A DNA stretch of 64,000 bases from Oopsacas minuta (GCA_024704765.1 JAKMXF010000302.1:310001-374000); one strand, 5' to 3'. Positions 26,644 through 35,922 are shown, numbered from the stretch's first letter. Program-made: numbers and translations. Notes: generated from the letters alone by a model not told the origin.

Positions 26644-28814
26644 CTATGGATTACTGTCTACATGATTCTCAACTTCACTGCTCTCTCCATTCTCTCCCTT
26701 GGCGGGATTATCAATTACTTTATACCGGTATTGGAGTTTGATATCAGTAGGACTTTTCCATATTTGGTATTTAATACTTCGCATATCTAAGTCAAGACTT
26801 AATACTTGACCGTTACACATAATTTCCATCAAGTTGGCGGCCTGGTCTCCTTCAGGAACAGTCTTATGAATCTGCTCATAAGTGTAGTCTATTATTTTAC
26901 GAATAGAGACCGTGTCACATCCGTTAAGACGAGTAGGACATGATGGACTGAATAGACTAGCAGTTTTCTGACTAGCAACCGATTTATGTGGCGCTATTGT
27001 AAAGTTAATCTTGGTTTGCTGAGGGAGATCACTATGTAGAAGATAGTTAAGTGCCCATAATGGCAGGTGCTTTTTAAGTTTCTCTCTTTCAACTTCTTCA
27101 GCTGTATCTCTAGCAAACATCCTACATATTACAGTACCAGAATCATCTGAGTCTGTTAAGAGAATAGGAGTATGTCCTGGTACATTTAGAAATCCACTAT
27201 TTAAGGCGTTCTCATCCTTTTCAAATCCCTCATTATCTTCCTTGTTATTCGCTTGATTAAATTTCACAAACTCATCGAATACACCTTTCAGTACCAGACA
27301 ACCCAGATTGTATTTCATACTAGCTTTATCCTTTCCAGGGAGTTCTGTTTGAGAAGCTAAAATCCAAGCAGAATTCCAACCAACTTCATCAATACAGATT
27401 GTTATGAGACCAGTTTTGATACGTACAGTGAACCAATTGGGGATCATGTTATTCAACATTTTCCTCTCAACTTCTTCGCGATAAGTCTGTAGCTCACCCT
27501 TGCCTTTAGTCTCTATGAACTTTGCAAACATAACATCCCATAACTGTACGTCACCTGACGTATCCTTGGTTAAAATATGTCTCCGATCTTTTAAAATTGA
27601 GAAATCTTTAATCCTTGGTTTTCCTGGGATAATCTTGACTGGCTGTTTAGGAACTGTATGACTAGGAGCAATAGCATTACTTTGTGTTATTCCATCTAAA
27701 CCAGATAGATTTAGCTTCCAACCTCTAACAGTAGAGCTAGTAGTTGCTACCCAGAGAAGAGAGTCTTGTTCATCAATACAGAAGCTAAGAATTGAACAGG
27801 ATTCTTGTATTATGAGTTTAGTTACTTGAGTTGTAATATCCACCCAATAGATTGCACCATCTTTCAAACCAACTAGAAACTGATCGAATTCACCTATCAA
27901 TAAATCAATAAATAAATAAATAAATAAATAAATAGACAGGTGAATAAAGTAACTGAAAATGAATTTACTAAAATTACAATTGGTTTCATATTTAGCTCAC
28001 CTAATGGCATAATAATCCAGACACTATCAGGCATAGGAATCGTGAACAAACATCTCTGTTGAGATATAGACCATACTTTTAAAGTGTTATCAGAAGATCC
28101 GGATATACATAGAGTACCATCATTATTAATAGCAAAAGTTCTAACATTGTCAGAGTGTCCACGGAGTTGTATCATACTGTCCTTTTGAGAGCCCCTCGGG
28201 TCCCAAACTCTTATGAATTTCTCAGTAGATCCACTCACAACTAGGCTACAATCAGGTGTAGTAGCTATACTGTAAATAGAATTCTTATGACCAGATAACT
28301 TAATCATCGGAGCTGTAGTATTAATTGTCCTGAGCTCTTCCAGATCCCAGATAAGTATCTGTTTATCTAGCCCAGCTGATACAAATTTGTTCGCAGCATC
28401 AGCATAAGCAAGAGCAGTAACATAGTCTGTATGAGACTGTAGATTACGTATACATGTACCATCACGTATGTCCCATACCTTGATAGTTGTATCAGACGAT
28501 CCACTGACTAGGATATTATTATCAGCTGATAAGAAGATGGAATTTACCCAGTCTGAGTGTTCATCCATGCACTGAGTACATTTTATACTACTCTCTCCTA
28601 CTGGAGGATTTGATGAACATTTCCACGTACGAATTATGGAATCACGTCCAGCTGTGTATAGTAACCTATTCGAGCTGTCAAACTGTAGACAGTTTACACC
28701 TGCTCGGTTCTGAAGTTCTTCTGGTTCTCGTAATATGTAAGAGATTGTTACTCTCTTCTTGCTCCCACTAGACCCCAGGCCCCCTTTGGTGTCAGGCCGC
28801 GTCTTATCAGACAT
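26644..28814 (-). CDS. WDR48: WD repeat-containing protein 48 (UAF1), two exons; intron 28000-27894
   Basis: KKRVTISYILR..NRAGVNCLQFD..LYTAGRDSIIRTW, WD40 repeats, IPNWFTV.IKTG and a SUMO-like C-terminal domain. The in-frame splice gives PLG|EFDQ. Confidence 0.93.
27900..27934. repeat. (AAAT)n tetranucleotide repeat inside the WDR48 intron
   Basis: Directly visible: ataaatcaataaataaataaataaataaataaata. Confidence 0.85.
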
Positions 28815-32072: not shown

Positions 32073-34091
32073 TTAAGGCCGAGCCGCAAATCTATTCATT
32101 TCAGCGTTTCTTTTTGTATTGTGGCACTGTGATGGCCATTGCATGTTAACAGAGTGACACTCTCCAGGAGAAATCCCTTCGCCCCTGCCAAAAGGAAGCC
32201 TTGCCTTTCCAACTTCAACTAATCCATCATTCGGCCCTTTCAAAACAACATTTGTACCAAAATTGCAATATTTCTTCCTTTTACCATAAAATGTTCTGTA
32301 AAAATGAACTTCATCCTGAACATATAAAGGAACCTTTGAAAGCCAAGCCTGTGCACCCTCATAAGTTAACTCCAAATTTGACCCGCACATTATTCCAAAG
32401 AAATGACCAATGTCTGCTAATAGCCCAGCTAGAGGGGTACCTTGGTAAGGCGCTCCTACAGTTTGGATCTTACGATCAGTCCCGTTTCCACTCACTGTGT
32501 ACGAATCAAGACCACTATAATAGTAAGAATAGAGATGGACAGAAGCAAGGCCACCTTGTGAATGAGCGACTATACTAAACGCACTGAGATTGTTATCTTC
32601 AGTAAAGTCTATAAGATGTCTTGCAAACTGATCATTTGACAGGGATTGTCCCCAATCTTTGAATGCTATGTAATCAGTAAAATTACCAACCGTAAACGGA
32701 TTCTCTTTCGCGCAGTATCCGTGTACGAGAAGTAGGTTAGGCTGTTGATTCTGTGAATATGATTTTAAACGTTGTTTTGCAAGTATTTGTTGTTGATTTC
32801 TTTTGCAATTAGAAAAGTTTCCAGACATAACAGATTCCTGTATTAACTGGAGGTTAGGTTCTCCAAGGTTAACTTGGAAACTTTGAATTTCGAGAACAGT
32901 TGTAAAGAGATTTAAATCCTCGATTGTTACATTTTTTAGGAAAATAATATTTGGAGGCATTGCATACCGTGTGATCCAATTCGGTTCAATATATATTGGC
33001 AGTAGATAAGATCCTGTTGAGTTTCGTTCTACATCAGTTAGGTGAATTATCCAACATATTGGTACAAGTTCTCCGTCTACTATGCCCCAGATCTCTGAGA
33101 AAACCCGGTAAGTTAAGTCCATCCCTTCCTTCCAATCAATATACAACTCGATTTTGAAATAGCCCTCACTCAAAGTGAATATAGCGTAGTTGTTAAATAC
33201 AAGAGTATTATAAGACACGCCCACTAAATGCCATTGTGTACGAGCAAACTGTATGCCACTCTGAGTCTGTCCACTGACATTTACAAAAACTTTATAAACA
33301 CCCCCGATTGGAGGCATAAATACTCCAGTCAAATGTAACTCTCTTCTTCCAACTCCAGACAGCTGGAAACTAACCAAATTTATATCTTCTTTGTACTTAA
33401 CGCCGTCTGGCTGCAGTACTTCAAGGTTACTACTATACGTCGCCAACTTTGGAATGTATTCATCTAGCTCAGTTTTATAACTTGGCATTGAAACATTTAC
33501 TTTTATATAAACTGGCGTGTTTGTTAATGTAAATTTCTGAACTTGATCTACCTGTGTTTCTAATATAATCTGACTACCATCGAATCCAACAAGAACGTAG
33601 ATAGGGTAAGATTCAACATTATCAAGAAATGCAAATAGAATATATTTCCTGTATGTAACTTTTGCTTGCCATGTACCTACCTTAGGACTAGTAACGATAT
33701 AACTTTTGCAAAGAAATTTAAAATTATCGCTTATTGTGATAACCTCTTGCGCAACAGATAATGAAACAACTGGAATACCACTTGGAGCTTTCAGAGAAAC
33801 TGTGATTCGCTTCATAATCCGTTTCGCGTTATTTTTCATTGGCAGCAGAACACTCACTGACATCTTTTCACAGCTATCAACTGGAAAGGGTATGTATTCA
33901 CTTGAAGAATTAGTAGGCAATGACGATATTGGTAAAAGCAATAAATCAGAGTTCATCGGGAAATAACCAGGATAAAATCTCTCAAACTGGTCTGGGGGAC
34001 CAGATAAATATTTGTATTTGTAGCCAGCTGAAGCCAAACCAAGGAAGATATGTAACAGTGCAAGATATGAAAATTGGGAAAATCTAACCAT
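32073..34091 (-). CDS. Secreted 672-aa protein with C-terminal alpha/beta-hydrolase domain, conditioned-medium-factor (CMF)-like, intronless
   Basis: Signal peptide. The C-terminus LLLVHGYC..SNDQFA..AHSQGGLA.VHLY.YY.SGLD..IQTVG.PYQGT.LAG..CGSN..LTY.GA..WL..DG..E..CH..M..P.QC....RN..MN..AAR matches recalled CMF-family sequences from Dictyostelium and bacteria. Confidence 0.75.
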   Translation of the reverse strand: MVRFSQFSYLALLHIFLGLASAGYKYKYLSGPPDQFERFYPGYFPMNSDLLLLPISSLPTNSSSEYIPFPVDSCEKMSVSVLLPMKNNAKRIMKRITVSLKAPSGIPVVSLSVAQEVITISDNFKFLCKSYIVTSPKVGTWQAKVTYRKYILFAFLDNVESYPIYVLVGFDGSQIILETQVDQVQKFTLTNTPVYIKVNVSMPSYKTELDEYIPKLATYSSNLEVLQPDGVKYKEDINLVSFQLSGVGRRELHLTGVFMPPIGGVYKVFVNVSGQTQSGIQFARTQWHLVGVSYNTLVFNNYAIFTLSEGYFKIELYIDWKEGMDLTYRVFSEIWGIVDGELVPICWIIHLTDVERNSTGSYLLPIYIEPNWITRYAMPPNIIFLKNVTIEDLNLFTTVLEIQSFQVNLGEPNLQLIQESVMSGNFSNCKRNQQQILAKQRLKSYSQNQQPNLLLVHGYCAKENPFTVGNFTDYIAFKDWGQSLSNDQFARHLIDFTEDNNLSAFSIVAHSQGGLASVHLYSYYYSGLDSYTVSGNGTDRKIQTVGAPYQGTPLAGLLADIGHFFGIMCGSNLELTYEGAQAWLSKVPLYVQDEVHFYRTFYGKRKKYCNFGTNVVLKGPNDGLVEVGKARLPFGRGEGISPGECHSVNMQWPSQCHNTKRNAEMNRFAARP

Positions 34092-34887: not shown

Positions 34888-35922
34888 ATGAAGGGGCTAG
34901 TTTGTTTTACTATGTTTGTAGTATTCTGTTCCTACGTTATTTGCTCAGATAACAGAGACAAAAGAATTGCAATAGAGGAGATACCTATACCTGAGGACAA
35001 GGATTCTATCACTGATTTCAATCAGCATGGAAAGGCAATAAGAGAATCCTCTCCTTATGGCGAATACTTAGCAAGCGAGGTTAGCAGCGAGGATAATATA
35101 GAACAATACGAATACGGCAGTGAATATGATTCTGATAGTGATATGGAAGCTTATGAGATCGATTATTTGGATCCTGATGAAAACTATGGTGATGACAGCT
35201 TTTATTCTGAAGGCATGAATGAAATAAGTGAGGAAGAAGATAATGCAAAATATAATGAATATTCTGAAAATGAAGATAATGAAGATTATGATGATTATGA
35301 TGATTATGATGATTATGATGATTATGATAAATTGGGCGAAGACATGGATTATTACACAGAGAATGACAATGAAAATGATTCAGATTATGATAACGATTGG
35401 GAAGATGATAAGGATGGAAAAGAAAACTACTTCACAGATACTACTTTAGATTATGATGAGTATGATAGTGATTATGGAAATGGGGACACATGGCATAGGA
35501 AGAGAAGAGAGGCAACAACAGTTGGCAGCTTATCTTGTAGCTTAAAATCAAGTACATTTCTTAGTGATAGAATCAAAACAAATCAAGATACACTGATGGC
35601 TTCTCGAGATGCACTTATGGTTTCTCGAGATACACTTATGGCTTCTCGAGATACACTTACGGCTGCTCGAGATACACTTATGGCTTCTCGGATGACATTT
35701 CGGCAATATAAGCAACGATGCAGGGATATTACTACCCAGCCAATAAAAACAACAACAACAATAACAACAACATCAACAACAACAACAACACCTGAAACTA
35801 AAACAACCACCAAACTAAAGACTGAACCACCAACTCTACCCAAAACTCAACCACCCATTCAAACAAACCCTGATCACAACCATGATCAAACAGTTGGCGA
35901 CCTGCCAGTTTGTGAGATTTAG
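34888..35922 (+). CDS. Orphan secreted protein: signal peptide, Asp/Glu/Tyr-rich region, RKRR furin site, five 7-aa repeats, Thr/Pro-rich tail
   Basis: 344-aa ATG ORF. Hydrophobic N-terminus ending CS-D, DKR and RKRR basic sites, (DYD)5, (DTLMASR)5, poly-Thr. Confidence 0.8.
   Translation: MKGLVCFTMFVVFCSYVICSDNRDKRIAIEEIPIPEDKDSITDFNQHGKAIRESSPYGEYLASEVSSEDNIEQYEYGSEYDSDSDMEAYEIDYLDPDENYGDDSFYSEGMNEISEEEDNAKYNEYSENEDNEDYDDYDDYDDYDDYDKLGEDMDYYTENDNENDSDYDNDWEDDKDGKENYFTDTTLDYDEYDSDYGNGDTWHRKRREATTVGSLSCSLKSSTFLSDRIKTNQDTLMASRDALMVSRDTLMASRDTLTAARDTLMASRMTFRQYKQRCRDITTQPIKTTTTITTTSTTTTTPETKTTTKLKTEPPTLPKTQPPIQTNPDHNHDQTVGDLPVCEI
35284..35328 (+). repeat. (GATTATGAT)x5 coding tandem repeat encoding (DYD)5
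   Basis: Five exact 9-nt units. Confidence 0.95.
35587..35691 (+). repeat. 21-nt x5 coding minisatellite, consensus GATACACTTATGGCTTCTCGA (DTLMASR)
   Basis: Five units starting at 35587, 35608, 35629, 35650 and 35671, each with 0-2 substitutions. Confidence 0.95.

Follow-up and report, generated by a model that had tools for sequence, protein, structure and literature searches.

A 672-residue protein of Oopsacas minuta appears to be a new animal member of the known but uncharacterised 'conditioned medium factor' (CMF) family, and we consider it likely that it is a two-module glycoprotein of the secretory pathway that works as an esterase, lipase or phospholipase, either secreted or phagolysosomal. 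Its gene lies at 32073..34091 on the minus strand of a 64,000-nucleotide stretch of DNA (GCA_024704765.1 JAKMXF010000302.1:310001-374000), hereafter the window. The original prediction for this gene had proposed a secreted CMF-like protein with an apparently intact lipase triad, possibly acquired horizontally and possibly used in cell-density sensing. In the mechanism proposed here, an N-terminal stack of beta-sandwiches (~390 residues) would probably bind a surface or the substrate, or act as a spacer, and the C-terminal hydrolase domain, equipped with Ser511-Asp622-His646 and an HG oxyanion motif, would perform serine-hydrolase catalysis. Possible targets include the membranes or ester-linked components of bacterial prey, and the protein may take part in the phagolysosomal handling of prey lipids.

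The C-terminal domain is predicted to be a lipase-type hydrolase

The C-terminal domain (residues 449-672; 32076..32747, minus strand) is predicted with high confidence to adopt a lipase-type alpha/beta-hydrolase fold, on the basis of its model and its structural matches, and it has a low ratio of nonsynonymous to synonymous substitution rates (dN/dS, given below). When residues 446-672 were folded with the family alignment, the model reached a predicted local distance difference test (pLDDT) of 92.3 and a predicted template modelling score of 0.91, and the blocks holding Asp622 and His646 averaged pLDDT 93-97. VIA-align matched this domain model to BlEst2 of Bacillus licheniformis (6wpx, Z 19.1), the P. 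aeruginosa lipase LipA (1ex9, Z 18.8), a Burkholderia lipase (8xy5, Z 18.3), and Legionella PlaB (6zth, Z 17.3), and Foldseek was concordant with these lipase matches (E 5e-08). The sponge protein shares with these bacterial enzymes (6wpx/6wpy, 1ex9, Burkholderia lipases, and the phospholipase PlaB, 6zth) the alpha/beta core (201-208 residues aligned, root-mean-square deviation 3.1-3.8), an HG motif that follows the first strand of the core, an elbow of the A/G-x-S-x-G form, and the order Ser-Asp-His. The identity is only 16-17%, and the sponge protein differs from them in its four family-specific invariant cysteines, its large N-terminal beta-sandwich module, and its failure to match any Pfam lipase family.

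The predicted motifs VHGYC, AHSQG, PNDG, and ECHS were found to start at residues 456, 509, 620, and 644, respectively, as claimed. H457-G458-Y459-C460 (32712..32723, minus strand, as are all motifs here) follows the first core strand and resembles an oxyanion-hole-type HG motif. In bacterial lipases, the HG motif is linked with the oxyanion hole, and by analogy we infer the same role for HGYC. The nucleophile elbow, A509-H-S511-Q-G513 (32553..32567), is an A-x-S-x-G variant that contains the candidate catalytic Ser511; in the predicted model it sits between strand 506-510 and helix 512-523, and the family profile pairs it with AHSRGG in 7x2p, a putative lipase (E 0.0028, the best sequence-level E to any PDB chain). 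The candidate catalytic Asp622 is part of P620-N-D622-G623 (32223..32234), and the candidate catalytic His646 lies beside Cys645 in E644-C645-H646-S647 (32151..32162). H457-G458-Y459-C460, S511, G513-G514, D622-G623, C645-H646, Cys569, and Cys609 were invariant in 86/86 diverse C-terminal domains, HGYC also in 28 full-length sequences, and H510 and Q512 were at least 90% conserved among the 86. Every family-invariant column (HGYC, S, GG, DG, CH, and the four Cys) is present in the window protein. As judged from these alignments, the conservation of the motifs appears far beyond chance, and the predicted triad of a secreted-type protein is thus intact, its Ser511, Asp622, and His646 being invariant throughout the 86 sequences. 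Since Cys460, Cys569, Cys609, and Cys645 are all invariant, two disulfides among them are plausible.

Searches against curated families gave little. A Pfam scan of the window protein returned DUF7379 as the only match (E 0.039, 14.3 bits versus a cut-off of 33) and NCBIfam returned none, which places the protein in no curated Pfam or NCBIfam hydrolase family; one of the 28 family members weakly matched Abhydrolase_6. A sequence search of the PDB with the single window protein gave no matches, and the family profile alone reached lipases, weakly. The assignment as a hydrolase is one by predicted fold, within a family that has no Pfam model.

The relatives of the protein are named conditioned medium factor

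For the comparisons below, we retrieved the best 120-150 matches of each search, about 300 relatives in total. The family itself is larger: with a threshold of E<=1e-3, an exhaustive profile search recovered 2500 cluster representatives (50% identity), and 512 with one of E<=1e-30; in almost every case the match ran over the full length. When residues 445-672 were searched, 'conditioned medium factor' was the name of dozens of the proteins matched (44-50% identity, with E of about 1e-50 to 1e-54). NCBI and UniRef give the bacterial relatives either this name or 'choice-of-anchor X domain-containing protein', and the named ones come from Xanthomonas, Stenotrophomonas, Acidobacteria, Pyrinomonadaceae, and Phycisphaerales; for example, a Xanthomonas melonis protein is 35% identical over residues 256-671 (E 6e-75). 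The ESM Atlas sequence-feature score to conditioned-medium-factor proteins was 0.96, and the full-length model matched the Atlas cluster 'Conditioned medium factor family protein' with a template modelling score (TM) of 0.82 over 612 residues and the 'choice-of-anchor X' cluster with a TM of 0.80. The bacterial CMF and choice-of-anchor X proteins have the same two-module layout (about 630-660 amino acids, aa) and identical invariant residues; in contrast to them, the sponge protein falls in a separate, eukaryote-labelled branch, and its N-terminal module is too divergent for Pfam to recognise. A word search with the full-length alignment found close kin only, the words having been drawn from the poorly conserved first 500 residues.

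Membership of the window protein in the NCBI/UniRef 'conditioned medium factor' family is thus supported indirectly by sequence. The predicted similarity to CMF held for the bacterial proteins of that name, both in sequence and in the model, whereas the tie to Dictyostelium CMF runs through database names and through amoebozoan members of the branch, not through the CmfA sequence. A Dictyostelium-labelled protein was not seen among the best 120-150 matches or the names of 30 representatives; given the amoebozoan members of the same branch, homology to Dictyostelium CmfA itself is likely. The term 'cmfA' in animal papers proved to be the abbreviation CMFASW and not the gene. In the searchable literature, we found no tested function for the bacterial CMF-named proteins, and no mention of a hydrolase fold or of bacterial homologues for CMF.

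Five family members (P0063, P0069, P0075, P0086, and P0098) are 1100-1900 aa long and carry the ~650-aa unit at one end, and the CMF-type unit is therefore also fused to large extra regions.

The gene is intronless and encodes a secreted-type protein with an N-terminal beta-sandwich module

The whole gene (32073..34091, minus strand) is a single uninterrupted open reading frame (ORF) of 672 codons plus a TAA stop, its start codon being the first one downstream of a preceding stop. Because the ORF is collinear with full-length relatives, it is read as intronless, in agreement with the original prediction: family profile matches cover positions 5-654 of 654, and the BLASTP alignment with the Protostelium nocturnum protein covers residues 27-670. 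It is the one copy of the CMF-like gene within the window.

Residues 1-22 (34026..34091, minus strand; MVRFSQFSYLALLHIFLGLASA, then G) resemble a signal peptide, as had also been predicted. The hydrophobic stretch comprises residues 7-22 (Kyte-Doolittle peak 2.39) and ends in ASA|G, and residues 2-19 form a helix in the predicted full-length model; the call is a heuristic one, from the hydrophobicity profile and the A-x-A end. The same profile contains no second membrane-span-like segment in the 672-aa protein, which has nine N-x-S/T sequons. Compared with window 32676-34091 (minus strand), a 471-aa version of this gene (P0007) is 100% identical and begins at Met202; since residues 1-201, signal peptide included, are conserved, this gene call is truncated N-terminally.

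Residues 23-412 (32856..34025, minus strand) are predicted to form a stack of beta-sandwiches of the DUF4785/'choice-of-anchor X' type. The module opens with the family motif K-x-L-x-G-P-P-x-x-F, and residues 28-408 are all beta in the AlphaFold2 model. Foldseek matched it to Legionella lpg0956/NttD (4kh9; E 7e-13, TM(target) 0.60), and the DUF4785 cluster of the ESM Atlas aligned to residues 17-412 (TM(row) 0.67). Xanthomonas homologues carry PF20943, whereas by sequence no Pfam family matched this module in the window protein. NttD of Legionella pneumophila (DUF4785) is an effector of unknown activity, released by type II secretion, that helps the bacterium grow in Acanthamoeba (PMC6617341). 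Its fold resembles the one predicted for the sponge module, and both proteins are of the secreted type, but NttD is without a hydrolase domain and the identity is 11-12%. Between the two modules of the sponge protein lies a poorly conserved Gln/Lys-rich linker (residues 413-448; 32748..32855, minus strand), with pLDDT <50 at 421-448 and a gappy, variable stretch in alignment A1.

The gene occupies a conserved sponge locus under purifying selection

The gene has an animal-type context: the flanking genes are eukaryotic on both sides (TRAPP, NHL, WD40/DUF3337 (WDR48-like), MCM, ThiF-rhodanese, Mss4, and ankyrin), and the neighbouring TRAPPC5 and NHL genes are likewise intronless. DNA contigs from the source sample cross the gene, as well as the flank on either side, with an even depth. 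Other ENA assemblies contain eight close relatives (67-86% identity), on contigs of 300-766 kb; 4/4 of the assemblies fetched share one gene order, namely CMF-like, TRAPP, NHL, WD40, WDR48, and the CMF-like gene was intact in all five compared (the window and these four). The CMF-like gene is thus a real gene of this genome and not contamination.

Pairwise dN/dS among the five genes was 0.06-0.10 for the whole gene and 0.025-0.04 for the C-terminal hydrolase domain. These data show that purifying selection on the gene has been strong, at a single syntenic locus, in relatives of this sponge that are deeply diverged. Synonymous sites were saturated in most pairs, and the gene is therefore old within the sponge lineage. 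Contigs of a related organism (~96% identical) gave 16 synonymous versus 13 non-synonymous among 29 listed differences, all in the N-terminal half, a weak check from a partial list.

The sponge genes branch with eukaryotic members of the family

Trees were built with FastTree (214 rows) and with IQ-TREE under LG+C20 (111 rows and 56 rows), and the approximately unbiased (AU) test was carried out on the 56 rows. All trees divide the family in two, one part holding every named bacterium and the other the sponge clade. In the IQ-TREE LG+C20 analysis, the eukaryote-labelled branch (34 rows) was supported at 100/100, as was the sponge clade within it. Every named row of this branch is eukaryotic: the amoebozoans Cochliopodium minus and Protostelium nocturnum, the heteroloboseans Willaertia magna (two copies), Heterolobosea sp. 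BB2, and Pharyngomonas kirbyi, and the malawimonad Gefionella okellyi. The sponge clade has a long stem, of about 2 changes per site. Its closest neighbours in the tree, at 99/96, are the four unlabelled environmental sequences P0016, P0115, P0231 and P0138, followed by P0009 and P0011 at 98/94. P0011 is flanked by a tubulin-tyrosine-ligase gene and an mRNA capping-enzyme gene, and P0016 adjoins an Arf/Ras GTPase gene; both contexts look eukaryotic. No other animal was found among the about 300 retrieved relatives, a sample in which the best 120-150 matches per search leave weaker animal or holozoan homologues possible. The gene does not fall within a widespread metazoan lipase family.

Two accounts of origin were weighed against this tree. 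A recent horizontal transfer out of bacteria, or an assembly contaminated with bacterial DNA, would fit the first named matches of a word search, which were proteins of Phycisphaerales metagenome-assembled genomes (30-32% identity), as well as the lack of an intron, a genome scan that turned up 25 bacterial loci, from Planctomycetota, Lysobacterales, and Acidobacteriota, and the dense bacterial communities that live with sponges. The Phycisphaerales were rejected as nearest relatives, however, as their rank was an artefact of being the sole name-bearing matches in that first search. The intronless TRAPPC5 and NHL neighbours, the eukaryotic genes on both sides in an order common to four other assemblies, and the uniform depth of the source contigs across gene and flanks all speak against a bacterial source, as does the placement in the eukaryote-labelled branch. 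Forcing the sponge clade to group with the bacterial and Amphora-type rows cost 17 log-likelihood units and was marginally rejected (AU p 0.036, for a group defined post hoc). A recent transfer from a bacterium to an animal is disfavoured by these sequence comparisons, we regard this account as very improbable, and the horizontal acquisition raised in the original prediction is not upheld for a bacterial donor.

A transfer from a phagotrophic or GC-rich protist into the glass-sponge lineage, instead of vertical inheritance with loss in other animals, is harder to judge, and we hold it tentatively, at slightly less than even odds. It would account for the absence of another animal among the retrieved relatives, named NCBI/UniRef entries included, for the nearest branch consisting of unlabelled environmental sequences on compact, GC-rich contigs, and for the very long stem. 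On the other hand, the family is present in at least three eukaryote supergroups (Amoebozoa, Discoba, and malawimonads), and an ancient eukaryotic gene with many losses is therefore equally possible; besides the room left for weaker animal or holozoan homologues, the sister sequences could themselves be holozoan protists.

The diatom Amphora coffeiformis (P0213) and the environmental sequences P0032 and P0034 form a separate, very long branch among the bacterial sequences, which suggests either that the family entered eukaryotes more than once or a long-branch artefact. Another member of the eukaryote branch, P0100, was located at L027 6001-7956 and L028 1288-3243 (Joint Genome Institute metagenome contigs), which are gene-dense and AT-rich (33-34% GC). 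Among the genes beside it are those for a choline kinase, a START-domain protein, and a protein with Lys/Ser repeats; neither tRNA genes nor a tandem paralogue were found on these contigs.

Catalysis is favoured over density signalling

The triad does not vary between bacteria and sponge, and no part of the gene is under tighter constraint than the hydrolase domain; the conserved job of the family would therefore most simply be secreted serine-hydrolase catalysis. The named eukaryotic holders in the sponge's branch are all phagotrophic feeders on bacteria, as is the sponge, and secretory or phagolysosomal processing of prey lipids is therefore a reasonable guess. Several observations weigh against a catalytic role. 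In the full-length model, the loops of Asp622 and His646 have pLDDT <50; enzymatic data for any family member were not found in the searchable literature; and any substrate, location, and cell type of the sponge protein would be putative. In addition, a search for RNA runs returned none, and the sequencing-run contigs over the region are DNA-like, spanning intergenic DNA, and hence uninformative on expression. Dictyostelium CMF, the single family member that has been studied, is described as a receptor-binding signal and not as an enzyme (PMC2121003).

The last point leads to a different view, in which the sponge protein would be a cell-density or starvation signal like Dictyostelium CMF, secreted, read by a receptor, and steering aggregation or tissue behaviour, with the hydrolase fold serving as a mere scaffold or amplifier. 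The family is named after CMF, the sponge protein is a member of its eukaryote/amoeba-type branch, and it looks like a secreted glycoprotein. According to the same paper, ~200 bound CMF molecules suffice and an amplifying step is needed (PMC2121003), and it may be speculated that a catalytic ligand could supply this amplification. Against this, the family is mostly bacterial and its triad is invariant throughout, which argues for an ancestral enzymatic job and a lineage-specific role in Dictyostelium; moreover, the link to CMF is one of name. The likeness of the two proteins consists of a family tied by database names, of a secretory glycoprotein character (a candidate one for the sponge protein), and of the amoebozoans Cochliopodium and Protostelium in the sponge's branch. 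They differ in that CMF is known as a receptor-binding signal (PMC2121003) and comes from a social amoeba, whereas the sponge protein belongs to an animal and its invariant triad argues for catalysis. We therefore find a role as density signal quite unlikely; the sponge protein is probably not primarily a receptor ligand, and density sensing by it would be speculation.

A bolder combination of the two views is conceivable. Within the reach of our searches, glass sponges alone among animals would have kept an amoeba-type CMF gene, the whole family would consist of active serine hydrolases, presumably including the Dictyostelium factor, and CMF-type density sensing itself might be catalytic. We think this unlikely. 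If it were true, a catalytic step might release or destroy a lipid cue, explaining the reported need for an amplifier, and in an animal that is syncytial and feeds on bacteria the enzyme might serve to signal feeding, starvation, or density.

Returning to the preferred reading as a secreted-type hydrolase, its interest lies in the family. With 2500 representatives at 50% identity, the 'conditioned medium factor' family is a large one, of which the searchable literature characterises one Dictyostelium protein, as a signal. The invariant triad and the predicted lipase-type fold offer a directly testable hypothesis for what its bacterial and amoebal members do, and perhaps CMF too. The eukaryote-type branch extends into animals, so far into glass sponges alone, which makes the gene a clean case for the debate over the protist-type genes that were retained or acquired by early animals. 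The sponge gene is no evidence of quorum sensing in animals.

Neighbouring open reading frames

Upstream of the CMF-like gene, the ORF at 34888-35922 (plus strand) encodes 344 aa with a signal-peptide-like start and long Asp/Tyr/Glu-rich runs, and it has no Pfam match. A GAT-type repeat within it (~35284-35474) showed very high contig depth in the run of a related organism. In 3/4 of the related assemblies, an ORF of 128-376 aa without a Pfam match lies between Mss4 and the CMF-like gene, and the fourth likewise has an ORF without a Pfam match upstream of the CMF-like gene. At 26644-28814 (minus strand), the WD40 ORF (27897..28814) and the DUF3337 ORF (26644..27900) share four bases (27897-27900). 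The pair resembles a single gene of the WDR48/UAF1 type that a frame change or a very short intron has divided, and the related assemblies show the same division.

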